This document shows positions 9 to 64,000 of a stretch of DNA of 64,000 nucleotides, in pieces. Under the pieces are notes generated by a model. It was not told the DNA's origin and did not search any database. It saw only the letters and a list, made by a program, of their open reading frames with translations. The position numbers were made by a program, and so were the translations under genes. The stretch is from sequence record OR532817.1; one strand, given 5' to 3'. Within the stretch, counting starts at the first letter, position 1, and each line of letters starts with the position of its first letter.

Positions 9-662
9 GTGATGGCGGAATATGCTGTTGCTCATGCCACCTGTGGTGAACAAGTTGGATCAGCAAATTTATTAGCTGATGTATTCAGTACTGTACAAAG
101 TACCCAATACAGTGTTAAAATGTATAGGGATAAGTTTGTACAGTTGTATATGCTTGATGTAATAAAAGAAGAACCAGAATGGACTGATTTTATTATTGAA
201 CGTAGGATTAGTGGTGTTTCTAATCCAGATAAAGATGCAGTACAAGTATTTGATGAAATACTTCAAGATGTATATAGTAATGAACAAAAAAGTCTAAATC
301 AATACAATGTACGTTCTACCAAGACAGTGCTCGTGGGATTTGATGAAGATGAAGAATATTACTATTTTCGTTGTACTGAAGTAGATTTTAAATACGAAAC
401 TCCCAGTACAGTTAAAGTTAAAGAATTTACTGAAAAGAGTAAAAACTTCAAAAAACATTCTTCTAATATTAGTAATATAGTTGGTTATAATAAAGATGGT
501 ATTGACATATATCAATGGGTACACCCAAATAACTCAACTTATACCAGATGTTTAAAGAAACGTTATAATTTAAAACAAGAAGAATCATTTTATTTTAAGA
601 TAAAGAAGCATTCCTATCAACGACCTGATGAATCAGTGTTACTTGGTATGATTTACTTCTGA
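9..662 (+). CDS. hypothetical protein, probably 5'-truncated by the window edge
   Basis: 217-aa ORF whose frame is open to the window start; no motif recognised. Confidence 0.7.
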   Translation: MMAEYAVAHATCGEQVGSANLLADVFSTVQSTQYSVKMYRDKFVQLYMLDVIKEEPEWTDFIIERRISGVSNPDKDAVQVFDEILQDVYSNEQKSLNQYNVRSTKTVLVGFDEDEEYYYFRCTEVDFKYETPSTVKVKEFTEKSKNFKKHSSNISNIVGYNKDGIDIYQWVHPNNSTYTRCLKKRYNLKQEESFYFKIKKHSYQRPDESVLLGMIYF

Positions 663-670
663 TTTTAGTC

Positions 671-695
671 GTCCAGTACAATATAAGTACTGGAC
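671..695 (+). terminator. intrinsic terminator-like hairpin
   Basis: GTCCAGTAC-aatataa-GTACTGGAC followed by a T-run, just after a stop codon. Confidence 0.7.
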
Positions 696-715
696 ATTTT
701 TTTAAGGTAAAAAAA

Positions 716-994
716 ATGAATATATTACAAAAAGTTAATCTATTTGGAAAAGCGTATACAAATGCTTTTTATGGTATTGATAAACGTTATGAATATGCTA
801 ATTTTTTAAATAGAGAAATTGAATTTAGTGGAATGAATAGGTTATTGTCTGGTAAACGTGTAACTATTGTTTTTAATGGTTATCAGGGATATATTAATCA
901 AATTCGTCATCTAGATGAGAAAATTTTTGCATACGTTTATACTAATAATGGAAATTTATTGATTAATTTATCTTTTTTGGAATTGATTGAATGA
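716..994 (+). CDS. small hypothetical protein (early array)
   Basis: 92 aa, AAGG RBS, stop overlaps the next start (ATGA). Confidence 0.8.
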   Translation: MNILQKVNLFGKAYTNAFYGIDKRYEYANFLNREIEFSGMNRLLSGKRVTIVFNGYQGYINQIRHLDEKIFAYVYTNNGNLLINLSFLELIE

Positions 995-1275
995 AATTAA
1001 TAGACCAAGTTATTCTTTATAAGAAAGTATTTGATTATATGGAAGATTTTCTTGATGGTACACATTATGAATGTTGCATTTATGTTACATGGAAAAAGAA
1101 TGTAATGGAAATAGAAAAAGCTACCATTTCTAAAATAGTGCGTATAAAAAGCCTTGATACTATTGGTACTATTATTGAACTTAATATAGGAAGATATTTT
1201 GCATTTTTTGGTGTAAAAGTACCTGAAAACGATTTTGCTCTTATAATTTCATTAGATGATATTGAGTTTCTTTGA
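991..1275 (+). CDS. small hypothetical protein (early array)
   Basis: 94 aa, ATGA coupling. Confidence 0.8.
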   Translation: MKLIDQVILYKKVFDYMEDFLDGTHYECCIYVTWKKNVMEIEKATISKIVRIKSLDTIGTIIELNIGRYFAFFGVKVPENDFALIISLDDIEFL

Positions 1276-1304
1276 GTTTTATCTATTTGGTAATATAAAA
1301 TATT

Positions 1305-1616
1305 ATGGATAAATTACACAAAGCAGTATTATTTTTAAAAGCATATAGCTATGAGTACTTACAAAGTCATGGAAAATGGAATGGTAGTTATAAGGATTTA
1401 TATTCATCTGTTTTTCTTAATGAAGTAAATCTTGTGATATCAGAAGTACAAAAATTATATGAAAGAAAACTTGTGCATACGAGATTTGGTATTGGAATTA
1501 TTATTAGTATATTTTGCTTCACATACGGTTCCTTTTTAGTCGCAATAGAAACAATAGTAGAAGGCAAACCACAAACAATAGTATTAAAATTAAGTGAGAT
1601 ATATCTGGATGAATGA
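1305..1616 (+). CDS. small hypothetical protein (early array)
   Basis: 103-aa ORF in a co-directional array. Confidence 0.8.
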   Translation: MDKLHKAVLFLKAYSYEYLQSHGKWNGSYKDLYSSVFLNEVNLVISEVQKLYERKLVHTRFGIGIIISIFCFTYGSFLVAIETIVEGKPQTIVLKLSEIYLDE

Positions 1617-3023: not shown

Positions 3024-3035
3024 TAAGGACACCAA

Positions 3036-12975: not shown

Positions 12976-13015
12976 TGAACAGGAATAGAGAGTACTAAGT
13001 ACTCTCTAACTTATT

Positions 13016-22662: not shown

Positions 22663-23400
22663 ATGATTAGTACTAAATTCATTAAAAAAGCTGGTGATAA
22701 AAGATTACTAATCATTTCTGGAAATGGATTGTCAATGGATAGTGGTTTTGATTTATATGATATTCCTGATAATTTTCAGATAAATGATGTATGTAATATT
22801 GCCAGTTTAGGTACAAAATATCACGTAGTACATTCTTATTATAATACTCTTAGAGTTAAATTAAAAGATATTGAACCAAACGAAATGCATTACTATATTA
22901 AATCATTACAAGATGAGTATGGTGATAACTTTTTACACATGACCAGTAATGTAGATGATTTATATACAAGAATTGGTGGCACTGAATTAAAATTGCATGG
23001 TAATATTAAAGAGGTTATAGAAAACTACACCGCTGATGGTTCTGAAATAGAAATAAAAGAATTAGGTTATGAACCATATATTCCATGTAGTGGTATTTTT
23101 TCTAAACCCGGTGTTACATTAATTGGTGAGTTCCATAGTTATTTTTATGGATATAAAACCCCAATTTATGAAGAACGAAATGAAATACTAAAATCATTAA
23201 ATGAAAATGATACTGTAGTAGTAATTGGAAGTTCTGATTCAGTACTGAAATGGAGCCATTTAATAAATGATAAATGTTACACAGTACTAATCAATATAAG
23301 AAAAAATGAAAACGATCATCGTTTCAATGAACGAATTTATAAATCTTGTTCCAAATCTGTATTAGATTTATCTGGAATAATTTCAAAAAGGATGGTATAG
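22663..23400 (+). CDS. Sir2/sirtuin-family protein (divergent)
   Basis: SGNGLSMDSG (GAGxS-like), TSNVDD (TQNVD-like), LHGN (catalytic His), KPGVTLIGE, VIGSS. Confidence 0.8.
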   Translation: MISTKFIKKAGDKRLLIISGNGLSMDSGFDLYDIPDNFQINDVCNIASLGTKYHVVHSYYNTLRVKLKDIEPNEMHYYIKSLQDEYGDNFLHMTSNVDDLYTRIGGTELKLHGNIKEVIENYTADGSEIEIKELGYEPYIPCSGIFSKPGVTLIGEFHSYFYGYKTPIYEERNEILKSLNENDTVVVIGSSDSVLKWSHLINDKCYTVLINIRKNENDHRFNERIYKSCSKSVLDLSGIISKRMV

Positions 23401-40713: not shown

Positions 40714-40742
40714 ATTATCCTCATTTAATTATAATATAATGA

Positions 40743-40780: not shown

Positions 40781-40781
40781 A

Positions 40782-43028: not shown

Positions 43029-43064
43029 ATTTATTCCTTAATAAATTGTAAACCTTACTTTTAT

Positions 43065-45011: not shown

Positions 45012-45039
45012 TATAATTCTCCAAATATAATTATAATAA

Positions 45040-45078
45040 TATTTATAAAAGAAAAAGCCCCTCATCATGGGGCTTTTT
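45040..45078 (-). promoter_or_regulatory. terminator plus late promoter cassette
   Basis: AAAAAGCCCC/GGGGCTTTTT hairpin (45052-45078); TATAAATA minus strand (45040-45047). Confidence 0.8.
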
Positions 45079-45082
45079 ATTA

Positions 45083-47431: not shown

Positions 47432-47459
47432 TATAATTCTCCAAATATAATTATAATAA

Positions 47460-47495
47460 TATTTATAAATAAAAAGCCCCAATTTGGGGCTTTTT
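47460..47495 (-). promoter_or_regulatory. terminator plus late promoter cassette
   Basis: AAAAAGCCCC-aattt-GGGGCTTTTT (47471-47495); TATAAATA minus strand (47460-47467). Confidence 0.8.
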
Positions 47496-47496
47496 A

Positions 47497-50400
47497 TTAT
47501 CCGTGACCGTTTATATTCATCAGAACAACAGTAGCTGTGTAAGAAGTATAATTTGTAATTGTTATAGAATTACCAGTTGTTGTTTTTGTGATATGTACCA
47601 TACCATCACCAGCAGTTCCAGAGGTAAATGATAATAATGATGTATTCGTTATACCAAAAGAAACTAATGTATTATTTGATGAATCAACTAATATAACACC
47701 ACTGGAAGCTTCCCCATTTACAATCACCCTAACCAAATACATAGAACAACCCACAACCGTGTTTGGTGAAACAGTTCCATTGACTGCTATATTACTATAA
47801 ACTCCTGAATTTATTGAACCTACACCTAATCCATTGATATTATTATTAACTAATGTATTATAGGTAGTTGATTGTGTTGATAAAGTTCCAATATGATTAT
47901 TTGATATATCAATTTTATTATCTCGTATTCTTTGAGATAATGCAGCTTTAAATCCATATTGACGATAACCACCAAATGTATTTCCAGTAATTGTGGTATC
48001 AGTTGATGATAAAGTATTAATAAATGCACCAGAATCTGTTATACTACCTGGCTGCGAAGAAAAATAACAATTTCTCACAGAACAATTAGAACCAGTTATT
48101 ATTATTGCATCCTCAGTACCATCGGAGACTGTAACAGGTTTTAATGCTCTCCACACAACATTATCAACATTAACATTGGATGTTGCATAAATTAAATTTT
48201 TTCCACAATCATAAAAATCACCTCCTAAAATATCACAATATCCACCATGAAATAACTTACTTATTCCACGTGCTGATGGAGAAAGCAATTCTAATGGTCC
48301 GGCAGTTCCTGTGTGTCTAAAATACCATCCTGAACCAGAGCTTGAGATCATCACCGGAGCTATAAACTTCACACCCCAACTATCAGATCCTGAAACCGGA
48401 TAAATATCAAATTGTGGTGATGTAGTTGAATTCCACGTCATTTCTGGTGTGGTGAATGTTACACCTTGACACCCTTCCAATAAATGTGATGTATCATCCC
48501 TTTCAAATTTTGGAAAATTAAAATTAAGATGGCGGCATTTATTTAAAGTCATACCAACATAATTTGCCTCTAAATGCAATCTATTGAAATAACAAGCATT
48601 AGTTGCATCATCACTTCCAATATTATCAAATTTCATACATGGTGTGTTTTCTGAATTATTTCCACAATACATAATACTAATATTATCAAATGTTGTATCA
48701 AATAATTCATCGCCATAAATTGCACATGCTTTAATTCTACGAAATCTAACATTTCTCAAATATCCATATGATGCAAATTTAAGTTGTATTCCACCAATAC
48801 CACTCGGTATATCATTTTCATCAGCCCAATAGTCACCAATGATCAGATTTTCAATACCGAAGTACATTAATCTTTCCCACACCCTAACACCATTTAAATC
48901 AAATGGTTTTGTCCCAATTGTAGTGAATATCCAACTTGCAGATGCATGTGGTATTAATTTGGTAGCATAACCAGATTGACCTTCATAAAAAACCCCAGAA
49001 TATAATGGCAAATCTTTTATTTTATATGTCCCTCTACCAAATATCACTCTTATAAAAGAATTTTGACCTATTACATATTTGCTATCAGCCATCCCAGTTA
49101 TTAGTGTTATTCTTTCAATTATAGCTTCAGTACAACCATCCTCTGCATTATTGAATTTTCCCAATGAATCTACATAAATTTCACTAAATGCATCAGAAAC
49201 TACACCAGAATATTTTAAGCCAATTAAAGATGAACCCTTATTTTCATCATTTGATAACAAATCAGCTTTATAATTATAGTAATTGATTAAGTCATTTTGT
49301 ACAGTACCATTAACACTACCAACCATATTTGCACCAGTATTTGACTTTAGTTCAGCTTTATTAATAAAAATATTAGAAGATTCAGCCATAGTCAAATATG
49401 GATTTGTATTTAAAACTAATTTACCAAGAATTGCAATTAAATTATCCCCAGTTTGTAATGCACCATTTAAATTAACGTACTGTCCATCAAGTGTGTAGTG
49501 ATTTAAATTAATACTTTGTAAAACACCATTAATAAAAATATTAATGCTACCAAAATTATACGGAACGAAAATTCTGGTTACATTATCAGAGGTTGCAGTA
49601 TAAGTCCAAGTAATTACGTCTTTGTTTGAATCTAATTTATAAAATGGTACACTGGGTACAGTACCAAGCGTTCCTGTACCAGTCCAGACAGTACCGTCCA
49701 CTGGATATAACCAGTACTGGTTCACAGTTGATGTACTACCAACTGTCCATATTTTCAATGATCTTCGTGGTAAACCAAATGCTACTTCAATACTCGGTAA
49801 ATGTGGTTGCCATTTTAAATTTATACCTTCATTTTTTAATGAATTTTTTAATTCCTGTAGTTCTTCTTCGGTTGCATAGGAGGTCAAATCTGCCTTGGTT
49901 ACTAAATTACTGTTCTGTACTGGAGAGTTATAAACAATAACATGAATATCATCTCCTAATTGTAAAGGAGAACTTAACGTAACTTCAGTACCGTTTAATA
50001 TATAAGCACCGCTGTCTGGATTTTGTAAAACACCATTGATAAAAACTTGCAATTCACTAAAATTAAAATAAGGTATATTTAGTTTATTATTCGATTCATC
50101 GGTTATAGTACTGGTATAACTGGCATTAACACTATCAATGAATTTTGGATCATTCAATGTAACAAAAACATTATCATTTTCATCCAAAGATGAAATAAAT
50201 GATAAAGTTGTACCTGATACACTATATGCATTATCGTACTGTAAAACACCATTGATATAAACAAGACCATCATCAAATTCACCGGGTAAAGTAAAATCAG
50301 TTTGATCTTGGGTTGCGAGAGCGGTAAATGAAACCAAGTCAGTCTCATTACCAAGAACAAGAATATCATCATTTAAATACAATTTATCACCAAGAGTGAT

Positions 50401-51069
50401 AGTACTACCGGATACGGTATATGAATCTGGATATTGTAAAATACCATTAATAAAAACAAAATTAGTTTTTTTAGTAAATGGTAACGCGATATCAGTTTGA
50501 TCTTCAGTTGCAGTTGCAGTGAATTCTTCATTATCAGTGTTGATTGTGTCTTCACCAACAACAACATAAATGGTATCACCTGTACTTAATTTGGAATTAA
50601 AAGTTACAGTACCACCAAATGTTTGGTAAGATAAACCTGGATATTGTAGTACACCGTTAACATAGATAATTGCTTTTTTGAAATCTAGATTAGGAACGGT
50701 AAATTGAGTTTGTCCGGCGGTAGCAATAGAACTCCATGTTACTGTAGTTTTGGATGAATCAAAGATTGTAACCCAATCTGAATCATTAACATCATTAACA
50801 ACTCTCATCATCAATTTCACTGGTGCCGAATCGGTGTCTTTCCAATCTCCAGTATTAAAAGAAAACATACCAGCGATATTTTCTTGTTTACCAAAATTTG
50901 TTACTAAAGTATTACCTGCTAAATCTGTAGTGCTTTCATCAATTTCATTTATTGTGAATTTTCCTTTAGGCATAATTTTAGAATCTGATAACTTTTCATT
51001 ATCAAATATCACTCCACCTTTAAGGGATGCATCAACTGCTGATAGTGATCCTTTAAATTTAAATGCCAT
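47497..51069 (-). CDS. large branching tailspike: multiple N-terminal docking repeats plus a beta-helix domain
   Basis: five F/YINGVLQ-type repeats, [11 protein letters not shown] module, then GRGTYKI...GQSGYAT beta-helix; 1190 aa. Confidence 0.88.
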
Positions 51070-51103
51070 TTCATAATCCTTTTAAAATTAAAAATTTATA
51101 ATG

Positions 51104-51140
51104 TATTTATAACGAAAAAGCCCCCACAAGGAGGCTTTTT
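51104..51140 (-). promoter_or_regulatory. terminator plus late promoter cassette
   Basis: AAAAAGCC...GGCTTTTT hairpin (51115-51140); TATAAATA minus strand (51104-51111). Confidence 0.75.
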
Positions 51141-51141
51141 C

Positions 51142-53817
51142 TTATACTGAAGTTCCTGAAGAATCCACCCATCCAGTATTGTCAGCATTTCTCCAAATAG
51201 GTTTGTTTATAGTAGTGTCAAAATATTGCATCCCAGTTGTTGCAGCCGTGGAAGGTCTCTCAGCGGTAGTACCAGAATAAACACGCACTACATCTCCAAC
51301 TTCTCTCCATATAGTAGCGGATGTTTTTATAAATTTATAAACTCTACCAACCACCATTGTTTTGTTTGAATTTTTTGCAAAATTATTAATTAAGAATGTT
51401 GAACTATTAACCAAAGTCACGGATGCAGTAGCATTTAAATATACATCAACTTCCTGTCCTATCATACCACCAACAAATCCTGTTATTTGTGATAACGATG
51501 TTGTTGAAATCGAAATAACACTAACACCATCTACGTTTGGTGTTGTGGTAGCATTCGATGAAATCGTTAATAAGCCATTAGTTGGTGTGTATTCAACGCC
51601 ATATGTCAATGGAGAATTTATCCATCCATTTTTATCACCATAAGAAAAACATTGATTTATCCAAGGTTTTAATCTAAGTGATAGATAATCAACATTAGAA
51701 AAATCAAATCCATAACTATGCAAACGTTGTGTACCAGTTCCATCAACTGGTGCATTGTCAGTCCATGCTAAACAATTACTTAATAATAATCTTGATGCAG
51801 AATCCAATGCACCAAAAGCTGGATATAGACCATCACCAGTTCTAGAATTATTATATGAATGACAATTAACCATTTGTACACCATTTAAAAGATAACCAGG
51901 ACCAACATTATTATCTGCACGTGAATCAGAAATTTTGTGATGAATGGAACTAGCAGATATATATATACCAGTTTCTGATATTTCACCCATTAATCCTGAA
52001 ATATAATGATTATTTCCTGATATTTTAATTCCACATATATAAGGAGACGAATTGGTAATTGAGTTAAGTCCTTTTACTTGAGCATTTCCCTCAATTCTGT
52101 GTATTTGACAATCTGATGCACCTGATATTTCAATAGTTCCGACATAATCAGTTCTGATTCTATTTTTTAAACATTCGTTGGCGATAACATCCTCTATTAA
52201 TCCAATATTACCACTAACTTCTAAACCTTGATCTTGAAAACCATAAAAACTACAAGATTTAACGCAAAATTCAGGACCACGTAATCTTACCCCACCGGCA
52301 CTATTAATAGCATCAGTAGCATCAAAATCTATTCCAATAATACCAAAACTTCTGGATGATACATCATTTTGGCTATTAGTTTCTGATTTTATAATCCAAT
52401 CATTGGAAAAATTCCTGAATCTCGTTCCATATGGTCTAGATGGGTTTCCCGGCGTGCCATAAGTCCAAGGTAAGGAACGACGAACTGAACCATTTCTACT
52501 ACCAATAAGCACCACATATTGTTTAGTAACTATATTACAATAATATTGCCCAGGTGGACACTCAATTACTGCTCCACCCAATGAATTTGCTTGATTGATG
52601 GCATTTTGTATATATACAGACAAATCACCTTTATATGTATAATTTCTAATACCATCATGCAATTCTGGTGGTATGAATTCAAATAATGATAACTTATTTT
52701 GGTATAAATCATATAGAGTAGATTTATAATTATTAGAAAACATAGAACTTTTATAATTTATATTACTCAACCCATCATCATTGGAAAATGAATTGTTAAA
52801 GGTGGAAAAATTATCAATATTCTGTTGCACAGAAGTCCCATTATTGGTATTAATATTTTCAGAAGCATCATATGATAATAAATCATTTTTCAAAACATAT
52901 TCATCACTTTGTACAACAACATCACCAAGCATTACAATAATTTCATCATCTTGATATAATTCTTCAGAAAAGGTGATAATTCTATCAGCACCAATACTAT
53001 ATGCAGTACTGGGATTCTGTAAAACACCATTAATATAAACAATAGCAGTACTGAAATCATATGGCACTTGAATTGTTGTTTGACCTTGCATTGCATTAGC
53101 GGTGTAAATTCTATTAAGTTTATCATTAGTACTGATATTGGGATTACCAATAAAAACATACAACAAATCACCAGCTTCCAATTCAGTAGTGAATGTTAAT
53201 GTGCTACCAGATACAGTGTAATTCAATCCTGGTAACTGAATTGAACCATTAACAAATACAGTTATAGTACTAAAAGTGAATGGAATATTAAAATCAGTTT
53301 GACCATCAGTTGCTGATGCAGAATATGTTTTAATACTTGCATTAAAATTCGGAGTAATTTTTTCAAAACCAGTACTGGTTTCAGGTGTACTACCAAGAAC
53401 ACCAACCCCATTCCACACTGTACCATCAGTATATAACCAATAATCATCTGATGTTGCAGTAGTACCAGATTTCCACATTTTTAATGAATTTTTGGTTAGT
53501 CCATAAGCAACTTCTACAGTAGGAAGATGTGCGTTCCAGTCCAGAGTTAAACCCTCTGTTTCCATTTTTTCTTTTAATTTGCTGTATATAACCGGAACCC
53601 AAGCAGTATCTGAAATACCACCATCAGTATTTGGATCGTTAGTACTGGTAATATGAGGTAATGTACCTTTCCATACATATCCAGTTTTAATTGAAGTTAC
53701 TGGATCTGTATAATATAAAATTTGGTTGTTTGATACTAATCGTTTGTTAATAACAAAGTCACCAGCATCAATTAGTGCACCTGAAATATTTGTTGCACTT
53801 AAATTGTTCAATGACAT
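51142..53817 (-). CDS. tailspike / putative polysaccharide lyase
   Basis: start at 53817 (GAGG RBS); TSP N-terminal module YVWKGTLP...DGGISDTAW; two NG.LQ repeats; CPPGQY beta-helix; C-terminal TTAERP...YFDTTINKPIW. Confidence 0.9.
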   Translation of the reverse strand: MSLNNLSATNISGALIDAGDFVINKRLVSNNQILYYTDPVTSIKTGYVWKGTLPHITSTNDPNTDGGISDTAWVPVIYSKLKEKMETEGLTLDWNAHLPTVEVAYGLTKNSLKMWKSGTTATSDDYWLYTDGTVWNGVGVLGSTPETSTGFEKITPNFNASIKTYSASATDGQTDFNIPFTFSTITVFVNGSIQLPGLNYTVSGSTLTFTTELEAGDLLYVFIGNPNISTNDKLNRIYTANAMQGQTTIQVPYDFSTAIVYINGVLQNPSTAYSIGADRIITFSEELYQDDEIIVMLGDVVVQSDEYVLKNDLLSYDASENINTNNGTSVQQNIDNFSTFNNSFSNDDGLSNINYKSSMFSNNYKSTLYDLYQNKLSLFEFIPPELHDGIRNYTYKGDLSVYIQNAINQANSLGGAVIECPPGQYYCNIVTKQYVVLIGSRNGSVRRSLPWTYGTPGNPSRPYGTRFRNFSNDWIIKSETNSQNDVSSRSFGIIGIDFDATDAINSAGGVRLRGPEFCVKSCSFYGFQDQGLEVSGNIGLIEDVIANECLKNRIRTDYVGTIEISGASDCQIHRIEGNAQVKGLNSITNSSPYICGIKISGNNHYISGLMGEISETGIYISASSIHHKISDSRADNNVGPGYLLNGVQMVNCHSYNNSRTGDGLYPAFGALDSASRLLLSNCLAWTDNAPVDGTGTQRLHSYGFDFSNVDYLSLRLKPWINQCFSYGDKNGWINSPLTYGVEYTPTNGLLTISSNATTTPNVDGVSVISISTTSLSQITGFVGGMIGQEVDVYLNATASVTLVNSSTFLINNFAKNSNKTMVVGRVYKFIKTSATIWREVGDVVRVYSGTTAERPSTAATTGMQYFDTTINKPIWRNADNTGWVDSSGTSV

Positions 53818-53850
53818 ATTAAACCTCATCTAAAAGTTTATGTATAGTAT

Positions 53851-53879
53851 TATTTATGATGCTCATTAGAACTAAATAC
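53851..53879. promoter_or_regulatory. back-to-back putative late promoters
   Basis: CATAAATA on the minus strand (53851-53858) and CTAAATAC on the plus strand (53872-53879) in a 94-bp divergent gap. Confidence 0.55.
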
Positions 53880-53911
53880 ATGAAAGCAAATGCAAACTAA
53901 GAGGTTTTGAC

Positions 53912-56902
53912 ATGTCTTTAAGTAATTTAAGCTCAAGCAATAGTAATGGGGCATTTCTTGATTATGGGGAATTCAGAAGTGGTGTTTATATCCAAACATC
54001 AAATCAGATTTTGTACTTCACTGATGAAAATGGAAATAAAGTAGGTTATCAGTGGAAGGGACTTTTGCCTCACACAACAACAACAAATGATCCAAATACA
54101 GATGGTGGTATTTCAGATACTGCTTGGTGTAGTATTGTTGGTAGTGGTTTTATTGAAAAATTATCAAAAGAGGGAATTGATTTAAGTTGGAAAGCACACT
54201 TACCAACAGTTGAAGTTTCTTACAATTTACCACATAAATCACTAAAAATATGGGAAGAAGGTACCATTAGTACTGATAATGATTATTGGTTATACCCTGG
54301 GGATGGTACCGTATGGAATGGGGTTGGTGTTCTTGGTAGTATCCCAGATGTACCTTTTAAGCAAATTGTACCACAAAATAATGTAATAGAGTGGAGCACA
54401 ATTGCAACAGAAGGACAAAACCAATTTACTGTACCGTATGAATTCACAAATATATCAGTTTTTATTAATGGATTATTACAGAATAAAAGTACCGGTGGTT
54501 ATGTAGTTAATGGCAGTACTGTTACATTAAATGGTTCATTAAAAGCTGGTGATGACATTCACGTAGTAATATCAAATATCCCTATTAAAAATATAAACTA
54601 TATTACTGATGTTGAATTATCACAACCAGATGCAGCACAAAAAATTGGATTATTGCATGGTGGAAATATACAAAATTTACAAAATTTTCTTTCTTTTGAC
54701 ATGTTTAATATTGATAAAACTGGTTCAACTGATGTAACTAGTCAAATAAATAGTATTTTTTCATTAGCAAATCAATTAAATATTCCAATAAAACAACATG
54801 ATGGTATATATTTAGTTTCTGGCTCCCCTATATTTACAATAAACACGGATTGTGATTTATCCGGTGTAACAATTTTACCATCTTCTAATTTTACTGGATA
54901 TTTTCTATATACACAAAATGAACAGCCAACAACATATAATTCATCTTCATCATTGGTCACTTTAATAAATTCAGCAACAATTAATGCAAATGATTCAATA
55001 TTATATGGATTAATAAATGATACCACATTGGATGGTAATGCTATTTTTATGAAAGGCAATGATCCTCTATATGTTGGTCGTGGCACAACAAAAAATTGGT
55101 GGTGCAATACGAGAATATCAAATCGAGGTAAAATGGATGATTATTTAAAATATGGGGTATCAGGTATAAATGAAGTTATTTCATTACCTATATCAAAAAA
55201 AGTAACTACAATAAAATTACCAAATTGGGATTTTATAAATCAACCTGCTAATAATGGAGTAATAAGATTTAATAATATTTCTAGATATAGAATACACGGT
55301 GGTAGTATTTTTAATAGGCCACTTAATGATATAAATAAAGATCCAGTTATAATTAGTATAAATTATGCATATGATATAATACTTCAAGATTTTTATGATG
55401 AATATCCATCTTGGCCATTAGTAGGTGGCTCTATTGCTTATGCATATACTATAAATTTCAACTATATTAATCGTGTTACATTTAAAGATATTAATTCACA
55501 AGGTTATGGTTGGGGAATTGTTGGAGGGCAACTAGCAACTAATATTACATATCTTCGTTGTAATATTAATAGAGTTGATATGCATGATCCATTTATGGGG
55601 TATTTAAAAATTTTAGACTGTGATTTGGGATATTATGGCGTATCTGCAACTGGTATGGGAGACATGTATATTGAAAGAACCACTTTTAATATTGATGATC
55701 TAGCATTTAATGGTTGGAGAGAAGTTGATGGTATAATAAACACTAGACCGGATTTTGGTGGGTGGTTTGATGGTGGTGTATATATAAAAGATATTACAAT
55801 TATTGGAGATGCATCCAAATTTAGAGAAATTAATAATCGCGGAGTTTCTTTATTTTCAGCATATTCATATAATGCAACATTAAGTTATATTCCTAATGGA
55901 TCACCGGTTGAACCGTGGGGATTTAAAGAAATTATAGTTAATGGATTACGATGCACTAAACCTATAACCGGAAAAAGATTTTCATCACTAATATTTGCTG
56001 CTTCTGTACAAAATGTAGATTATTTTCCAAGGCATGTAAAATTTAATAATTGTGATTTTAATTCTTCTGATGTTGAATGTATAGATTTGCATGGATGGAA
56101 AATAACACCAGACAATTCAAGTAAAACATCAATATCAAATACCATGAATTTTAAATCAACAAATTTTATAGAATTCACTGATTGTTCATTTGTGGGATTA
56201 GAAATTTTAAGACCATATTCTTCATATGATTATATGAATTTAGAGTTAAAACTTAATAATTGTAAATGTATTGGTTCAAACATTTCTCCTATTAGTTTTT
56301 ACACTGATCAAGTTGGAAATTACGAGTTTACAAACTGTGATATCAATTTTATTAGTGATACCACAAAGAGTACTTCAAGTTTATCAAATAGACAGTCATC
56401 ATTTGTAATAAATGGTGGTCAGATAAATTCTGTATCAGTACCATTTTCAATATTATATAATAGTGGTTATTCGACTCCAGTTTTAGTTAATAATACAATT
56501 TTTAAAGGTTCATTTTCACAATCATCAGTGACTTCTATTAATTTAAATGTGGCAGAATTCGCACAATTATCAAATTGTAGATTTTATAGTAATGTGAATA
56601 ATTCTTATATATCACCAGCATTATGGCTAGGTAGTACTTCGAACTCAGCAACATCAATAACTGTTATGCGTGGAAATAAAATTAATACAGTTATAACCAA
56701 TACCACAACTGTTAGTGGTATATCCATAAAAACTGATATAATTCCATTTGGAGTTGCATCTGGACACATAAATGGGTCTTTTTATGTTGATGCTACTGGA
56801 ACAACTGGAACATACCAATTGTATTTAAATTCATTGAATTTGAAATCACAAATTGGAAAAATTGTTTCAAATGGTACAATATCAGGAATTTATTTACAGT
56901 AA
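53912..56902 (+). CDS. tailspike / putative depolymerase
   Basis: same N-terminal modules, one FINGLLQ repeat, FDMFNIDKTGSTD then a long beta-helix; GAGG RBS. Confidence 0.9.
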   Translation: MSLSNLSSSNSNGAFLDYGEFRSGVYIQTSNQILYFTDENGNKVGYQWKGLLPHTTTTNDPNTDGGISDTAWCSIVGSGFIEKLSKEGIDLSWKAHLPTVEVSYNLPHKSLKIWEEGTISTDNDYWLYPGDGTVWNGVGVLGSIPDVPFKQIVPQNNVIEWSTIATEGQNQFTVPYEFTNISVFINGLLQNKSTGGYVVNGSTVTLNGSLKAGDDIHVVISNIPIKNINYITDVELSQPDAAQKIGLLHGGNIQNLQNFLSFDMFNIDKTGSTDVTSQINSIFSLANQLNIPIKQHDGIYLVSGSPIFTINTDCDLSGVTILPSSNFTGYFLYTQNEQPTTYNSSSSLVTLINSATINANDSILYGLINDTTLDGNAIFMKGNDPLYVGRGTTKNWWCNTRISNRGKMDDYLKYGVSGINEVISLPISKKVTTIKLPNWDFINQPANNGVIRFNNISRYRIHGGSIFNRPLNDINKDPVIISINYAYDIILQDFYDEYPSWPLVGGSIAYAYTINFNYINRVTFKDINSQGYGWGIVGGQLATNITYLRCNINRVDMHDPFMGYLKILDCDLGYYGVSATGMGDMYIERTTFNIDDLAFNGWREVDGIINTRPDFGGWFDGGVYIKDITIIGDASKFREINNRGVSLFSAYSYNATLSYIPNGSPVEPWGFKEIIVNGLRCTKPITGKRFSSLIFAASVQNVDYFPRHVKFNNCDFNSSDVECIDLHGWKITPDNSSKTSISNTMNFKSTNFIEFTDCSFVGLEILRPYSSYDYMNLELKLNNCKCIGSNISPISFYTDQVGNYEFTNCDINFISDTTKSTSSLSNRQSSFVINGGQINSVSVPFSILYNSGYSTPVLVNNTIFKGSFSQSSVTSINLNVAEFAQLSNCRFYSNVNNSYISPALWLGSTSNSATSITVMRGNKINTVITNTTTVSGISIKTDIIPFGVASGHINGSFYVDATGTTGTYQLYLNSLNLKSQIGKIVSNGTISGIYLQ

Positions 56903-56906
56903 AAAT

Positions 56907-56943
56907 AAAAGCACCTTCGGGTGCTTTTGTTTTTGCTAAATAC
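56907..56943 (+). promoter_or_regulatory. terminator plus putative late promoter
   Basis: AAAAGCACC-TTCG-GGTGCTTTT then CTAAATAC at 56936. Confidence 0.75.
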
Positions 56944-56974
56944 ATAATAAAATCTTTATAAAGAGGTTTATTAA

Positions 56975-59203
56975 ATGTCATTAATTCAACTTTCACCTAG
57001 TAATGGTGATTCATTATTAATAAATTCTGGTTCTTTTAGTACTGGTAAAATTATAAGAACACGAAATGAACTTGTATTTTATACAGATCAATACGGTAAC
57101 AGTACTGGATATCGTTGGTTGGGCAATTTACCTCATACAATTAATGGTAATTCACCACAAACCGATGGTGGTATTTCAAGTACATCATGGGAATCTTATA
57201 TTACTGCAAATTTATATGATAAATTAAAATCAGAAAATATAACTCTATCAGGTACAGCACATTTACCAACTGTTGAAGTTTCATATGGATTACCAAAAGG
57301 TTCATTGAAAGTTTGGACACCGGGTTCTACCAGTTCATCTTCTCAGTACTGGTTATATTCAGATGGAACTGTGTGGGGTGGTGTTGGTATGTTAGGAACT
57401 GAACCAGATGTACCATTCAAACAAATACATCTACAACGAGATATTATAAAATATAATTATATTGTCCAATCAAATGGTGAGGATACTGTTACTATACCAT
57501 ATGATTTTAGTTCCATTGTTATCTATATTAATGGTGTATTACAAAGTGACATAATTGATTCATATACTATTACTGGAAGAATGGTTAGATTTAGTTCAGT
57601 TCTTAATCAAGGGGATAATATACAAGTATTTCTTGATAATGTTCCAATAAGCAGCGTTGATTATGTATTAAAAAGTGATTTATCAGTATTTCCATCTTAT
57701 GATATCCTACAATCACAGACCGGTGCATCATTAATAGGACTATCACAAGGTGGTAATATCCAAAATTCAATACAATATATATGCCCTGAACAAATTGATG
57801 GTTGTTTATTATCTTATTCCGATTCAGTAGATGATACTTATTATGTTCAAGAAGCAATAAACAAAGCTGCAAGCAAGTCTGTTTTGGTGTCTAATATTTC
57901 ATATTCACCAGTTACTGTTTTTTTAAATAGGCCATATAGAATAACAAAAACATTAATTATCGATGGTTCTAAAGTTAGGGTTAGGGGATTGTCCGGCGGC
58001 TCTTTATATTTTGATACAACAGGTACATATAATAGTAATAACTGTATAACTGTAACTGGAAATTACCAACAAGCAGCTTTCCAAGGACAAATGTCAAATA
58101 TATTAGAAAATATATCATTATATTCAAAATCCCGCACCTTGAACTGTATATATTCAATTAGAGGTGATTCAGTATCATCAAATAATGGTGCATGTTTGCA
58201 TAATGTGTCTAATTGTACATTTACTGGGTTTAACAAAGTATATACTGCTGGACCAGGCGGGTGGGGTTGGAATTGGGTAGGGTGTCAGTTCAGTAATTGT
58301 GAAAATTTACTACAATTAGATGATGTAGATGACACATATGAAAGATTTACATTTACTGGTTGTATATGGCAAAATTCTGGCTATGCATTTATTATAAACA
58401 ATCCAGATGGAAAAGTATATTGGCATGGTGGTTCAATTGATTATGGGTCTGGATTGGGTATTATATCTGCTGGATTTATAGAAGCTAATTCACACTATGA
58501 ATGGACAAATAGAACTGTACCATTTCTACAACTAACATCTTCTAATGCCTCTGCTTCATTATCAGGTGCAATGTTTATAAGAAATAATCCATCAACACAA
58601 TATTATATAATAAATCAATCAATAAGTAGACAAGTGAAAATTGATAATCTAGTTATAATCTCAGATGGTGTCAATATAGGAAATGGTTTATTATCAAATA
58701 TGGAATTAAGAAAAGGAAGTATTTTTTCTCAAATCCAAGCAGCTAAAGGTATATTATATCATTCATCTGATGAAAATATAATTGAAGGTGATAAATTATA
58801 TGGTCAAATTACTGTGACAAACCCAACTTATCATTCATATAGTATTAACAATGGAATTCTTACTGTTACATGCAGTGGTTCAGGACAAAATGGATTCATA
58901 TTTATTGATATTCCGTCTAATTCATATATTTCATATGCTTACAAACTTATTGCATCTAATACATCCACTGGTAGTGTATATTTAGAAAAATTTATATTAA
59001 ATGGAAATAAAGAAACAATCAGAGTTGATACATCATATGGAACTACACAATGGATTTCAGGGTCTAACTTAGTTTCTGGTGGTACAGTTACAACAATTGA
59101 TTTACCAAAAAGTTCGTCATATATAAGATTAGCTTTTAATTTATCTTCGATGAATAGTGGGGGGACTTTTGTAATATCATCATTAAAAACTTTTACATAT
59201 TAA
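56975..59203 (+). CDS. tailspike / putative depolymerase
   Basis: same N-terminal modules, one YINGVLQ repeat, YICPEQ...DDTYYVQEAI beta-helix, C-terminal carbohydrate-binding-like domain. Confidence 0.88.
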   Translation: MSLIQLSPSNGDSLLINSGSFSTGKIIRTRNELVFYTDQYGNSTGYRWLGNLPHTINGNSPQTDGGISSTSWESYITANLYDKLKSENITLSGTAHLPTVEVSYGLPKGSLKVWTPGSTSSSSQYWLYSDGTVWGGVGMLGTEPDVPFKQIHLQRDIIKYNYIVQSNGEDTVTIPYDFSSIVIYINGVLQSDIIDSYTITGRMVRFSSVLNQGDNIQVFLDNVPISSVDYVLKSDLSVFPSYDILQSQTGASLIGLSQGGNIQNSIQYICPEQIDGCLLSYSDSVDDTYYVQEAINKAASKSVLVSNISYSPVTVFLNRPYRITKTLIIDGSKVRVRGLSGGSLYFDTTGTYNSNNCITVTGNYQQAAFQGQMSNILENISLYSKSRTLNCIYSIRGDSVSSNNGACLHNVSNCTFTGFNKVYTAGPGGWGWNWVGCQFSNCENLLQLDDVDDTYERFTFTGCIWQNSGYAFIINNPDGKVYWHGGSIDYGSGLGIISAGFIEANSHYEWTNRTVPFLQLTSSNASASLSGAMFIRNNPSTQYYIINQSISRQVKIDNLVIISDGVNIGNGLLSNMELRKGSIFSQIQAAKGILYHSSDENIIEGDKLYGQITVTNPTYHSYSINNGILTVTCSGSGQNGFIFIDIPSNSYISYAYKLIASNTSTGSVYLEKFILNGNKETIRVDTSYGTTQWISGSNLVSGGTVTTIDLPKSSSYIRLAFNLSSMNSGGTFVISSLKTFTY

Positions 59204-61308: not shown

Positions 61309-61312
61309 TAAT

Positions 61313-61346: not shown

Positions 61347-61394
61347 ACATTATGATATTATTACATCATTCTAAATCCATTTAAAAATCTTTTA

Positions 61395-61423
61395 TTGACA
61401 AAGGATCTATTTTAAGTTAAAAT
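61395..61423 (+). promoter_or_regulatory. strong sigma70-like promoter
   Basis: TTGACA-17-TAAAAT. Confidence 0.8.
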
Positions 61424-61451
61424 GCAAAAATAACTATCAAGAGACTGAAAA

Positions 61452-61955
61452 ATGGCTAAATTTGATCTACTACCAAAAAAGTATACTTTTGTATTACATT
61501 TACTAAGAAGAAGTTCAGTACTAAAATCGTTAGTACCTGATGATAAATCAAGAAAAGAACTTATTGAATGCATGTATGATATGTCCAGACATACATTATA
61601 TAAATTATTAAAGGATTATAGTACTGATCCGTTTAATTCACGCTTTGAACTAAATTCTTCACCGAATTATGTATCATTAGCGTCCATTGAAAAGTTTGAA
61701 CTAAGAGACAAAACTAACAATATTCTTTTATGTATCAGCAACTATAATGGCAGTACCGAAAAATACAACCCAAAGTATATCAAATGTAATGCATATATCA
61801 ATGGAAAGTACACAAGTGATGTTTTAACTGAAAATGAAAAATTGTACTTTTTACGCTTACATGAAGATGTACGAGTAATGATCAAAAACTTTGATGAATT
61901 GGAAAAATATCAGAAAATCAACGAAGTCAAAGATGAATTAAAAAGGTTATATTAA
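61452..61955 (+). CDS. hypothetical protein
   Basis: 167-aa ORF. Confidence 0.8.
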   Translation: MAKFDLLPKKYTFVLHLLRRSSVLKSLVPDDKSRKELIECMYDMSRHTLYKLLKDYSTDPFNSRFELNSSPNYVSLASIEKFELRDKTNNILLCISNYNGSTEKYNPKYIKCNAYINGKYTSDVLTENEKLYFLRLHEDVRVMIKNFDELEKYQKINEVKDELKRLY

Positions 61956-62443
61956 TGGCTATTGCACCCAAGAAACCAAAACCAAACGATAACTCAGTAA
62001 AATGCATGTTAGGTGCATTGTTATTATCCAAAAGTTTAATACTAATGGAGTACAATAACAAAAGAGATATTTTAAATGCGAAGTACTACAATTCAAAAGT
62101 CTCACAAGAGGTATATCATTTCTGTAAGTACTGTGTGAACAATCCATCAGATATAAGTTATTTTAATGAAAGTGGTAATTTAAGATACCAAAATCCTGTT
62201 TTTGAATTTTATATCGAACATTATGATATGGGATTCAAATATTCATCACAATCTGATGTTGTATACTTTAAAGTTCAAAATAATTGGATGGAATTCAGTA
62301 CTAACAAATATGACAAAATGTTATTGAGTTCAGTATTTTTCTGTTTATCAGAAAGAGAAAGAAATGAAAAAATTCTTTCCAATATACAAAATACAATAGA
62401 TAGTAAATTGCGTTATCTTGCTATGTATAAGGAGACAAAATGA
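61955..62443 (+). CDS. hypothetical protein
   Basis: 162 aa, TAATG coupling. Confidence 0.8.
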   Translation: MAIAPKKPKPNDNSVKCMLGALLLSKSLILMEYNNKRDILNAKYYNSKVSQEVYHFCKYCVNNPSDISYFNESGNLRYQNPVFEFYIEHYDMGFKYSSQSDVVYFKVQNNWMEFSTNKYDKMLLSSVFFCLSERERNEKILSNIQNTIDSKLRYLAMYKETK

Positions 62444-62838
62444 CAATTGATGATATTTACAGTACAATAAGGAATTTGGATAAGTACAAAAAAGTTTTTG
62501 ATTCAATTAACCGTAACATTTTTTATGGTATTGGTACTTATGATATTATACAACTGGAATACGATCAGGAAGGAAAAAGTGGTATAAATTTCGTGTGTCC
62601 ACGTGACAGTGAAAACAATTTCATGTATGTTGAAGTGAACGAAGATGGCATCAAATTTACAAAAATCTTCAAAGGTGGAATTGATTACGAAGAACTGGAT
62701 TTGAATGAAGAAGATAGTTTCTTTCAACAAGATACTGTTATAAATCTTGGTTTTTCATTACAAGAGTACAGAGAAATGCATAAAGATTTTATGCGTTATT
62801 ACAATGGCTTCCTCAAAGAATTAACGGTACATTTATGA
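62440..62838 (+). CDS. hypothetical protein
   Basis: 132 aa, AAGGAG RBS. Confidence 0.8.
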   Translation: MTIDDIYSTIRNLDKYKKVFDSINRNIFYGIGTYDIIQLEYDQEGKSGINFVCPRDSENNFMYVEVNEDGIKFTKIFKGGIDYEELDLNEEDSFFQQDTVINLGFSLQEYREMHKDFMRYYNGFLKELTVHL

Positions 62839-63299
62839 ATCTCAATACAAGTGAAATGTTCTTTAATGATGTAAAATCAAAATTTCTAAAAAATGATGGT
62901 AGTGGTTTTGATGAAAAAATCAAAGAAGTAGTATTGCGTTGGAAAAATAGTCCAGTACTGAATAATATATGCCCTCGCTGGTCATGTCAAAGTCATGATT
63001 ATGATGATTTTAATACTTATTATTACATTATATTCTGTACCCAAAACGATGGTGCGGAATTTCTGTACAATAAAGTATTGAAAAAGCTAATCGAACTCAG
63101 TGCAAAGTACGGTGTGATGGATAATTGTTGGGAATACAAGGTAATCCAGTTAATGAACACAATTGATAATAATCACACACCCTTTGAACCACACGTAGAA
63201 ATTGCATGTAGAGTATTTGGGGATTATAATAAAATTTGTATTTTAGAAAAAGTATGGTTAGAATTACTAGAAGGTATTGAAAAAGAATATGGGCAATAA
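62835..63299 (+). CDS. hypothetical protein
   Basis: 154 aa, ATGA coupling. Confidence 0.8.
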   Translation: MNLNTSEMFFNDVKSKFLKNDGSGFDEKIKEVVLRWKNSPVLNNICPRWSCQSHDYDDFNTYYYIIFCTQNDGAEFLYNKVLKKLIELSAKYGVMDNCWEYKVIQLMNTIDNNHTPFEPHVEIACRVFGDYNKICILEKVWLELLEGIEKEYGQ

Positions 63300-64000
63300 T
63301 AATTTTTTAGAACAAAATATAGTTAAACATCTTGCAGGTTCAAATGCATATGGTACTAATACCCCTGAAAGTGATGTTGATTACAGGGGTATTTTTTTAG
63401 CATCAAAAGAATATATCATGACTCCCTTTTATAATGTAAAAGAAGTCACTGATTCTTCAGAAGAAGATACAAAATTTTATGAATTGAATCAGTACATGAA
63501 ATTATATCTGGACGCTAATCCAAACATTCTCGAAAGTTTATGGGTAGATCCATCAGATATCGTTGATAGTACTGAATTTTATGATTATCTACGCAAACAC
63601 AATGCTGATTTACTAAGTTCACGAATTGCATTTACTTATACTGGTTATGCTTATAATCAGGTAACTCGTATGAAAAATCATCACGGTTGGATGGATAAAG
63701 AACGTACAGCAGAAAATAGATTAAATGAAATTATTTCTTTATATCCATATGTTATCACAAAAGAATGGATGTATGATACGTTTCCAGATTATCTGGTTGA
63801 ACGCGTATTAAAAGATGTAATCTTATCAAACATGAACATTTTAATTGATTTTGAAAAATTAATGCGTGATACTTCATTACAACTGGTTTCTATTGTTCCA
63901 CTGAAGCAATACCATTTTGTTAAATTGGTGCACAATTACAGTACTGAAAAAGTTCTTGATCGTGATTTCAATTTACTGAATTACAATAATGGTTATGAAT
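63289..64000 (+). CDS. Pol-beta-superfamily nucleotidyltransferase (RlaP-like), 3'-truncated by the window edge; not in ORF track
   Basis: LAGSNAYGTNTPESDVDYRGIF (GS...DxD), NPNILESLW; frame open to 64000. Confidence 0.85.
   Translation, partial: MGNNNFLEQNIVKHLAGSNAYGTNTPESDVDYRGIFLASKEYIMTPFYNVKEVTDSSEEDTKFYELNQYMKLYLDANPNILESLWVDPSDIVDSTEFYDYLRKHNADLLSSRIAFTYTGYAYNQVTRMKNHHGWMDKERTAENRLNEIISLYPYVITKEWMYDTFPDYLVERVLKDVILSNMNILIDFEKLMRDTSLQLVSIVPLKQYHFVKLVHNYSTEKVLDRDFNLLNYNNGYE

Follow-up and report, generated by a model that had tools for sequence, protein, structure and literature searches.

An iterated genomic palindrome, AGTACT, in a clade of lytic jumbo bacteriophages

The 64-kb stretch of DNA analyzed here (the window) is identical to bases 186,001-250,000 of Klebsiella phage RCIP0023 (OR532817.1), a jumbo myovirus of the RaK2/K64-1 group (genus Alcyoneusvirus) with a 350-kb genome of 31-32% GC. 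The window has a GC content of 31.1%. It encodes an RNA ligase, a polynucleotide kinase, a DNA ligase, a dCMP deaminase, NrdD, and many unnamed genes, together with a block of large tail-fibre/depolymerase-type genes. Scattered across these genes is the palindromic hexamer AGTACT, of which a preliminary description made by eye had reported about 160 copies, about 114 of them in the first 38.4 kb. Exact counting gave 161 sites (87..63945, no strand assigned; first start 87, last start 63940), with exactly 114 at or before 38,400. Dinucleotide shuffles of the window yielded 14.1 ± 3.4 sites (largest 25), and base composition predicted 21.8. AGTACT was the most over-represented of all 4,096 hexamers in the window, followed by its own overlapping neighbours. 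Annotated genes contained 147 of the sites, and the remaining 14 lay in 3.3 kb of intergenic DNA. Based on deposited gene coordinates, coding sites occupied frames 0/1/2 in the proportions 93/11/43, in agreement with the reported use of all three frames. The recurrent peptides mentioned in the same description were also found in excess (FSTE, 3 vs 0.2 expected; SVL, 24 vs 8.4), as were FST (21 vs 5.1) and STE (22 vs 5.4).

In window coordinates, the sites start at 87, 686, 1354, 2160, 2208, 2561, 2618, 2814, 3057, 3728, 4556, 4581, 4691, 4739, 4811, 4855, 5237, 6152, 6455, 6575, 8207, 8264, 8303, 8843, 9145, 9426, 9549, 9559, 9803, 10161, 11103, 11614, 11838, 11871, 12235, 12816, 12946, 12991, 12998, 13328, 13369, 14235, 14905, 15292, 15313, 15399, 16005, 16182, 16300, 16434, 16488, 16973, 17568, 18139, 18212, 19058, 19453, 19635, 19831, 19915, 20008, 20292, 20514, 20704, 21043, 21636, 22033, 22669, 23241, 23283, 23525, 23621, 24008, 24182, 24778, 25031, 25297, 25421, 25874, 26146, 26158, 26794, 27234, 27414, 27850, 28377, 28518, 28940, 29337, 30090, 30149, 30499, 30725, 31469, 31532, 31638, 32133, 32592, 32699, 33811, 33946, 34067, 34562, 35088, 35811, 35865, 35997, 36102, 36353, 36512, 36957, 37201, 38010, 38306, 38554, 38996, 40120, 40558, 42873, 43713, 44587, 44785, 44880, 45794, 45938, 46787, 49713, 50107, 50401, 53005, 53047, 53128, 53266, 53371, 53641, 54269, 54515, 56369, 56633, 57038, 57101, 57345, 59806, 59935, 60004, 60157, 60253, 60274, 60523, 60787, 60943, 61123, 61216, 61517, 61620, 62082, 62127, 62297, 62954, 63568, and 63940.

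The excess extended over the entire chromosome. The 350-kb RCIP0023 genome contained 954 AGTACT sites against 79 expected (observed/expected ratio (O/E) 12; 2.7 per kb), again ranking at the top of the 4,096 hexamers, and the word was present in every 10-kb bin. Its density was higher in noncoding (4.8/kb) than in coding DNA (2.4/kb), while sites were distributed evenly along genes without a visible effect of gene position. A 50 kb sample of E. coli K-12 contained 3 sites (0.06 per kb), making phage DNA ~45-fold richer in AGTACT than the sampled host-type DNA.

To separate pressure on the hexamer from coding constraints, we compared the 147 coding sites with three null models. Shuffling codon order gave an expectation of 23.5 ± 4.8 sites, and shuffling synonymous codons within each gene, which retained the protein and per-gene codon usage, gave 42.0 ± 5.6. 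The third, a DicodonShuffle-type randomization pooled over genes, moved 45% of codons yet left proteins, codon usage, and the precise dinucleotide counts unchanged. It yielded 43.0 ± 6.2 sites with a maximum of 61 (O/E 3.4, z score 16.9). We consider this pooled version the fair one, as the within-gene dicodon shuffle (88 ± 5.5) mixes poorly, leaving one gene without any change, and overstates the expectation. Under the pooled null, GTAC was present at 1.37x, AGTACA at 1.18x, and TGTACA at 0.99x, GGTACC was likewise not enriched, and unrelated palindromes were near 1. As these related words stayed near baseline, it is the full palindrome that carries the excess.

The preliminary description had named two grounds for dismissing the signal: a ratio below about 2 after shuffling, or an excess due entirely to GTAC. 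Neither outcome was observed. It had also proposed an order-4 Markov comparison, which returned an O/E of 1.18 for the window. Two thirds of the AGTAC/GTACT pentamers in the window are already part of AGTACT, so a model built from them absorbs the signal rather than refuting it. The excess is almost certainly not a by-product of codon, dipeptide, or GTAC/dinucleotide bias lacking selection on the hexamer itself. AGT, ACT, and GTA are favoured codons and GTAC occurs at 2.6-2.8x over a first-order model, which together with the low order-4 ratio would suit that explanation. However, codon, dipeptide, and dinucleotide bias was rejected by all three shuffles, a bias of GTAC alone was rejected by its small residual and by the unenriched TGTACA, AGTACA, and GGTACC, and noncoding DNA was even richer in the word. 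The excess of AGTACT is real and imposed at the DNA level, bearing out the proposal that pressure acts on DNA rather than protein.

This pressure is strong enough to shift protein composition. In RCIP0023, Ser-Thr dipeptides occurred at 1.46x but Thr-Ser at 0.89x, and Val-Leu at 1.45x but Leu-Val at 0.84x. AGT-ACT spelled 93 of 189 Ser-Thr pairs (49%), compared to 13% predicted from codon usage. One of six phage tRNAs is a tRNA-Ser(GCU) (segment L004, 27863-27951) that reads AGY and so serves the AGT codon. Segment labels convert to genome positions as follows: L004 15017 is genome 65,017, L005 24780 is genome 124,780, and L007 35196 is genome 285,196.

The sequences flanking AGTACT revealed a longer, graded word. 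Genome-wide, flanks were mirror-symmetric, with C at -1 in 49% of half-sites (G in 6%), T at -2 in 44%, T at -3 in 50%, and no preference further out. The same or a stronger pattern was found at the 197 noncoding sites, so the flank preference is not a codon effect. The full dyad is thus TTCAGTACTGAA, with information fading outward from the centre in coding and noncoding DNA alike. The 8-bp palindrome CAGTACTG had 248 genome copies (24 expected given the core). Within the window, 36 of the 161 sites had this form (86..63946, no strand assigned), compared to 3.7 ± 1.8 in the pooled dicodon shuffle (9.8x, z 17.7). These start at 86, 2617, 6151, 10160, 12234, 15291, 19057, 19830, 20513, 21042, 23240, 24181, 30089, 30498, 31468, 32132, 33945, 35087, 35810, 36352, 38009, 38995, 40557, 42872, 49712, 53004, 53046, 53370, 54514, 57100, 57344, 60156, 60522, 60942, 62953, and 63939. 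All five copies of the 12-bp palindrome TTCAGTACTGAA reported earlier were recovered, none with a strand assigned. Those at 20511..20522 (gene 19465-20529), 23238..23249 (gene 22663-23400), and 38993..39004 (minus-strand gene 38431-40713) lie in frame 2, while those at 30087..30098 (gene 29604-30464) and 32130..32141 (gene 31149-32348) lie in frame 0 and encode Phe-Ser-Thr-Glu. Because the flanks are symmetric even though almost all genes lie on one strand, the word appears to be read on duplex DNA.

To place the word in its lineage, we compared relatives by syntenic segments, recording observed and expected sites for each. AGTACT was strongly enriched in segments of RaK2 (Klebsiella; 125 observed, 11 expected), Muenster (Klebsiella; 92, 9.0), 121Q (E. 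coli; 45, 7.3), Munch (Salmonella; 69, 12.4), BF (Serratia; 85, 12.2), GAP32 (Cronobacter; 181, 8.7), and two loci of a 378-kb IMG/VR contig (70, 4.3 and 84, 4.6). It was the top hexamer in every one of these, a ranking that spans five further genera on five host genera. No enrichment was seen in the segments of the more distant relative PA5oct (Pseudomonas; 2, 7.5) or T4 (8, 5.3). The AGTACT excess therefore follows the phage lineage and not the host. At -1, Alcyoneusvirus and 121Q preferred C, GAP32 and the 378-kb contig preferred A, and Munch and BF showed a mixed preference, with G avoided in all genera (chi-square 188 for the difference between genera, p 2e-30). Thus, the core is fixed while the flanks drift. 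This drift and the graded 12-bp footprint favour a binding protein over a sharp-edged 6-bp enzyme. The contig itself (IMGVR_UViG_2974588491_000001; 378,379 bp; L027, L040) is a further jumbo member of the clade. Its two loci of 12-14 kb carry 70 and 84 AGTACT sites and lack GCGC altogether, and its flank favours A, as in GAP32.

To follow individual sites, 28-43 orthologue pairs were aligned by codon, and positions where the encoded amino acids allow AGTACT were scored. Occupancy of these permissive positions was 0.44-0.52 in all genomes compared. Across the whole of RCIP0023, 747 of 1,809 were occupied (41%), ranging from 0.30 to 0.55 in every 20-kb bin and reaching 0.69 in the terminal-repeat bin. 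The preliminary description had proposed a conservation test across orthologues. Where amino acids were conserved, AGTACT was kept in 62-69% of cases, compared to 12-24% for other hexamers. Positional association with RCIP0023 had an odds ratio of 9.3 for 121Q, 3.5 for Munch, and 1.5 (not significant) for BF. As shared positions fade with distance while occupancy stays level, density is held at a plateau and sites turn over.

The block of eight large tail-fibre/depolymerase-type genes (38431..59203, no strand assigned) was thin in the motif by both occupancy and density, with 3-8 AGTACT per 4 kb compared to 9-14 elsewhere in the window. Occupancy was near normal in the conserved N-terminal thirds (20 of 51 permissive positions) but close to the codon-usage baseline in the exchangeable middle and C-terminal parts (8 of 59; Fisher p = 0.004). 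These under-occupied domains account for the thinner second half of the window, and they indicate that newly acquired DNA starts without AGTACT. It is also in these genes that the sequence departs from K64-1 and RaK2 (coverage 73%). The last fibre-block gene (59224-61308) showed normal occupancy (11 of 19), unlike the other eight. Fibre/depolymerase genes at 38431-61308 are also compositional mosaics (e.g. 43065-45011 at 38.6% GC, with neighbours at 29-33%).

Pairs of AGTACT sites were over-represented at a single spacing of exactly 20 bp (21 pairs vs 2.6 expected), and dispersed sites showed no helical periodicity beyond it. These pairs are early sigma-70 promoters at genome 125-144 kb with the consensus AAAAAGTACTTGACA-N11-CAGTACTGTATAAT; one of them spans genome 126,411-126,450. 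Box 1 lies at about -41..-36, abutting the -35 hexamer, and box 2 at -19..-14; the 20-bp spacing places the two on roughly the same helix face. We considered box 2 as the TG of an extended -10 element, but its TG is at -14/-13, one base off the canonical -15/-14. About 25-35 such promoters exist, accounting for <7% of AGTACT sites. The annotated sigma-70 promoters of GAP32 itself have the same two boxes, a layout common to Alcyoneusvirus and Mimasvirus. Judged by position, AGTACT in these promoters may act as an operator. A scan of IMG/VR for the two-box promoter returned 27 matches, about chance level, and only known clade members among them were AGTACT-rich. Within the polynucleotide kinase gene of the window (4211-5155), a pair of sites 25 bp apart (AAAAAGTACTTCAGG...CAGTACTTTAAAAT, 4556-4586) resembles a two-box early promoter.

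Within the window, paired copies also form three stable hairpins after genes, all on the plus strand. At 671..703, 3' of a gene ending at 662, the motif is the stem (GUCCAGUAC / GUACUGGAC) of a terminator-type hairpin followed by seven U (-14.8 kcal/mol, z -5.35; matched by none of 200 shuffles). Two AGTACT 7 bp apart (AGAGAGUACU A AGUACUCUCU) fold at 12986..13008, between the DNA ligase gene (ending at 12975) and a gene starting at 13016 (-13.0 kcal/mol, z -3.86), with no U-run after them. The third, a long hairpin with two AGTACT 12 bp apart and an A-run and a U-run in its stem, follows a gene ending at 26131 (26137..26172; -20.1 kcal/mol, z -6.45; again matched by none of 200 shuffles). Its predicted fold is shaped like a bidirectional terminator.

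The densest part of the genome, at 5-7 sites per kb, is the ~20-kb direct terminal repeat and early-gene region from genome 123,701 to about 143,700. The terminus in RCIP0023 was mapped from the PhageTerm annotation of Muenster (position 123,701), since the RCIP0023 record is not opened at the physical end. Phased ATTCAGTACT(G) arrays were found within about 140 bp of the left end of the repeat. Just outside the terminus, RCIP0023 and Muenster carry six ATTCAGTACT copies with spacings of 40, 40, 20, 10, and 10 bp, the last of which stops 12 bp short of the end, so that the junction reads AGTACTGATATGCCACTA|AGTCC. The E. coli phage vB_Ec-M-J has copies 13 and about 68 bp upstream of its terminus, where the junction reads AGTACTGATATGTCACTAA|AGTAGG. 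In fEgEco12, another E. coli phage whose termini have been verified by restriction mapping (PMC13070987), three ATTCAGTACTG units within 100 bp precede GATATCCCACTA|AGTAGG. At the left terminus itself, GATAT(G/C)(C/T)CACTA is conserved between Alcyoneusvirus and Asteriusvirus, and the junction GATATGYCACTA adjoins the motif array. The idea that the sites serve a packaging or nucleoid protein gains circumstantial support from these phased arrays beside the terminus in three phages. No known RNA families were found in the hotspot. The ORF-free (open reading frame-free) start of the terminal repeat (genome 124,780-125,931) contains three Fur-box-like copies (AATGATAATGATTCTCATT) directly upstream of TTTACAGTACTGAATA, as well as repeated CTTTACAAATCTTTACAAAA units and terminator-promoter cassettes.

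The lineage is otherwise poor in palindromes, in line with the general expectation that phages purge them. GCGC was absent from the window and from the whole RCIP0023 genome (0 vs 126 expected in 350 kb). None of the segments tested from RaK2, Muenster, 121Q, Munch, BF, GAP32, or the 378-kb contig contained a single copy, against 11-41 expected per segment, while PA5oct and T4 contained it at normal frequency and the E. coli K-12 sample at 6.8 per kb. The absence of GCGC thus matches the AGTACT excess exactly in distribution. AGGCCT, CCTAGG, GAGCTC, CGATCG, TCGCGA, CGTACG, and AGCGCT likewise had zero copies genome-wide (11-19 expected). GGCC and CTAG were depleted in RCIP0023, where GTC/GAC was the rarest trinucleotide (O/E 0.59). 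This lineage seems to depend on restriction-site avoidance. In the literature searched, no paper ties AGTACT to jumbo phages, iterated palindromes to bacteriophages, or over-represented palindromes to this group, and the genome papers of RaK2, CBB, and fEgEco12 do not mention AGTACT. We found no earlier description there of an iterated genomic word in a lytic phage clade that otherwise purges palindromes.

Candidate enzymes were sought by a motif scan of all ORFs of at least 100 amino acids, followed by Pfam and NCBIfam. Two recognisable methyltransferases emerged, a C5 enzyme and a Dam-family N6-adenine enzyme. The ScaI-like N4-cytosine methyltransferase that the preliminary description had anticipated elsewhere in the genome was not found among these ORFs, and none was assigned as an AGTACT endonuclease. 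The Dam-family enzyme (172 amino acids; genome 180,646-181,164) is encoded 5 kb upstream of the window and belongs to a family spread over >1,200 unrelated phage records. The C5 enzyme (295 amino acids; genome 65,017-65,904; RaK2 ORF194) had its best matches among solved structures to the catalytic domains of mammalian DNMT3A/B, over its full length (E 3e-22), and matched these far better than the bacterial M.HhaI or M.HaeIII. RaK2 DNA was reported as methylated at CpG by its authors (PMC3622015), and the sequence of the C5 enzyme would be consistent with this. DNA of fEgEco12 was cut as predicted by ten enzymes, ScaI not among them (PMC13070987), which argues against global hypermodification.

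A Pfam scan of 30 early-region proteins returned an H-NS/StpA-like protein, a ParE-like domain, two domains of unknown function, and weak matches. The H-NS/StpA-like protein (166 amino acids; genome 129,553-130,053; RaK2 ORF332, Muenster gene 011) is encoded inside the terminal repeat. Its N-terminal H-NS oligomerisation domain scored 27.1 bits (PF22470), and the annotators of Muenster reported an HHpred match of 97% to NP_417155.1. The ParE-like toxin domain (PF24732, E 2e-10) and a weak protein-kinase-like match (E 3e-4) lie at L005 40095-40343 and 41026-41610, and a YeeU-like antitoxin is annotated nearby in Muenster. Elsewhere, the thymidylate synthase gene is annotated as two pieces (genome 285,196-287,153) with an intron-associated endonuclease gene between them, which suggests a group I intron as in T4 td.

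We favour, with a probability of roughly 45%, an explanation in which AGTACT, preferably within the dyad TTCAGTACTGAA, is recognised by a dimeric DNA-binding protein that the phage itself encodes and that serves in genome architecture, regulation, or packaging. We infer the existence of such a reader, its phage origin, and what its binding achieves from a word that has duplex dyad symmetry, is bound to the lineage, and acts everywhere as well as position-specifically at promoters and terminus. A dyad-symmetric homodimer of the lineage would read AGTACT on double-stranded DNA, in a role that may be likened to IHF or to the recognition subunit of a terminase (pacase). The word would have two uses, one at fixed positions in early promoters and terminus arrays and the other as a dense, position-independent mark over the whole chromosome at about 2.7 per kb. 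Steady genome-wide pressure would hold it at a plateau of 40-50% of codon-compatible positions, where individual sites would come and go and new DNA would arrive without it.

Several observations weigh against this explanation. No more than about 5-7% of sites fall within promoters or terminus arrays, and a function of the dispersed 90% is putative. A contiguous, conserved 6-bp centre is also expected from a type II methyltransferase or nuclease. Any one dispersed site can be under very weak selection only, and a functionless molecular drive could give the same plateau. The reader protein was not found in the Pfam scan of 30 early-region proteins. Homologues of the H-NS/StpA-like protein were detectable in two genera only (the Klebsiella and E. 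coli/Salmonella branches), and the H-NS family reads AT-rich minor grooves, not palindromes. Finally, Muenster carries a motif array at the right end of the terminal repeat as well but vB_Ec-M-J does not, which confines the link with the terminus to the left boundary.

Among the alternatives, a methylation word is possible, though on balance unlikely. AGTACT would be the target of a phage-encoded methyltransferase whose methylation state is read, as with GATC/Dam/SeqA in E. coli and P1 pac, where arrays of a Dam-site hexamer lie on either side of the cut and cleavage is controlled by methylation. Virion DNA would be fully modified and its early promoters on, while new replicas would be transiently unmodified, with early promoters off and no packaging cut, until methylated in turn. 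An uninterrupted palindromic core of 6 bp is what type II enzymes typically recognise, HIP1 (the highly iterated palindrome of cyanobacteria) as the nearest precedent includes a methylated site, and the phage encodes both Dam-family and C5 methyltransferases. RaK2 DNA is methylated according to its authors (PMC3622015), and the hexamer repeats around the P1 pac cut (PMC10028697) resemble the terminus arrays. However, neither methyltransferase can be assigned to AGTACT. The C5 enzyme is DNMT3A/B-like and RaK2 is CpG-methylated, but the C in AGTACT precedes T, the Dam-type enzyme comes from a family common in unrelated phages, and no further ORF with methyltransferase motifs passed Pfam or NCBIfam. 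A graded flank preference to ±3 would be unusual for a methyltransferase site, and methylation alone leaves the 12-fold enrichment unexplained. It is rather unlikely that AGTACT belongs to a two-word, sequence-encoded scheme of self/non-self recognition, with AGTACT as the positive mark and GCGC as the negative mark. AGTACT (2.7/kb vs 0.06/kb in host-type DNA) would be read by a phage protein licensing transcription, packaging, or protection, and GCGC (absent in phage, 6.8/kb in the host-type sample) would direct a phage nuclease or effector to host DNA only. Such a scheme, if true, would be a base-modification-free counterpart of T4 hydroxymethylcytosine.

A functionless molecular drive seems decidedly improbable. 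Here, biased repair, gene conversion, or replication would turn near-matches into AGTACT, much as very-short-patch repair shapes CCWGG-related words in E. coli or uptake bias shapes bacterial uptake sequences, and promoters, terminators, and arrays would be built from an abundant word. Enrichment is indeed position-independent and rises to a plateau, density is greater where constraint is lower (noncoding 4.8/kb), the highest occupancy is in the terminal repeat, which recombines every cycle, and recently acquired domains lack the word. Yet no one-mismatch neighbour was depleted (O/E 0.9-1.4 for AGTATT/AATACT, the deamination product), leaving no footprint of Vsr-type biased repair, and generic quasi-palindrome correction is excluded because other palindromes are not enriched. 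The promoter positions that Alcyoneusvirus and Mimasvirus share, together with the terminus arrays of two genera, speak for a function. The pressure also overrides amino-acid choice. Equally improbable is a host-factor word that recruits or titrates a DNA-binding protein conserved in Enterobacterales. Its concrete candidate is the nucleoid-occlusion factor SlmA, which is present in hosts of the clade and whose site consensus GTGAGTACTCAC has AGTACT as its central six bases. Confinement of the enrichment to phages of Klebsiella, Escherichia, Salmonella, Serratia, and Cronobacter, and its absence from PA5oct, would fit. However, SlmA sites need flanks (GTG...CAC) that the phage sites avoid, with G at -1 in 5-7% compared to 17% background, and sites with ≤3 mismatches to GTGAGTACTCAC numbered 76 against 113 expected. 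SlmA itself is ruled out by these flanks. Significant flank differences between phage genera are unexpected for one conserved host protein, and the 50 kb E. coli sample held 3 sites only. An RNA-level signal, with AGUACU as an RNase site or a pairing module in which two copies form stems, is very unlikely. The hairpins at 671-695, 12986-13008, and 26137-26172 speak for it, but mirror-symmetric flanks in a genome with nearly all genes on one strand point to duplex recognition, close pairs are rare apart from the 20-bp promoter spacing, and sites are spread evenly along genes. Recombination signals and decoys for a host enzyme, both raised in the preliminary description, drew no support from any of the tests run.

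Comparison with known systems places AGTACT between several of them. HIP1 (GCGATCGC), proposed earlier as the precedent, is an apt one: both are short palindromes in many-fold genome-wide excess, found in all frames and intergenic DNA as a lineage signature, and the function of HIP1 is unsettled. They differ in that HIP1 occurs in the genomes of cells and includes CGATCG, a methylated site whose cognate methyltransferases are known, whereas AGTACT is carried by a lytic phage clade and also sits at set positions in promoters and next to the packaging terminus. The uptake signal sequences (USS) of Pasteurellaceae and DNA uptake sequences (DUS) of Neisseria occur at ~1 copy/kb in all frames, bias peptides, and form terminators as inverted pairs. 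AGTACT showed a comparable density and peptide bias (2.7/kb; Ser-Thr and Val-Leu at 1.45x; three window hairpins), and in both cases positions turn over at a stable density and foreign DNA is without the word. By this analogy, AGTACT would behave like USS/DUS in population-genetic terms. Competent bacteria maintain USS and DUS, which are asymmetric 9-12-mers, through their uptake machinery; in contrast, AGTACT is a palindrome in a lytic phage without an uptake step. Chi and KOPS (FtsK-orienting polar sequences) are read by a DNA-tracking machine. Like AGTACT, they are short words brought to high density by genome-wide selection and serve as a mark of self DNA, but they are asymmetric and strand-polarised. 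AGTACT and its flanks are dyad-symmetric, and a palindrome cannot carry polarity. Phage P1 pac has seven TGATCA/G hexamers in 161 bp around its packaging cut (PMC10028697). Repeated hexamers similarly cluster at the putative packaging cut in RCIP0023/Muenster, vB_Ec-M-J, and fEgEco12, and both 6-bp words occur in phased arrays at the packaging site, scattered genome-wide, and in promoters. GATC, however, shows no strong genome-wide enrichment and has a readout that requires Dam methylation, whereas AGTACT is enriched 12-fold.

Lytic phages are known to drop short palindromes against restriction, and this lineage does so, yet fills itself with AGTACT. That the enrichment has persisted in at least five phage genera and on five host genera implies a chromosome-protein interaction that is strong, conserved, and as yet unnamed, and that touches early-promoter control and the formation of genome ends. 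The reader, once found, would offer a handle on the recognition, organisation, switching, and packaging of 350-kb phage genomes. The signature of AGTACT excess and GCGC absence may be used to recognise the clade in metagenomes and to date acquired segments, such as depolymerase domains. More broadly, iterated palindromes such as HIP1, with a function that is still under debate, would gain a tractable viral model in this clade.

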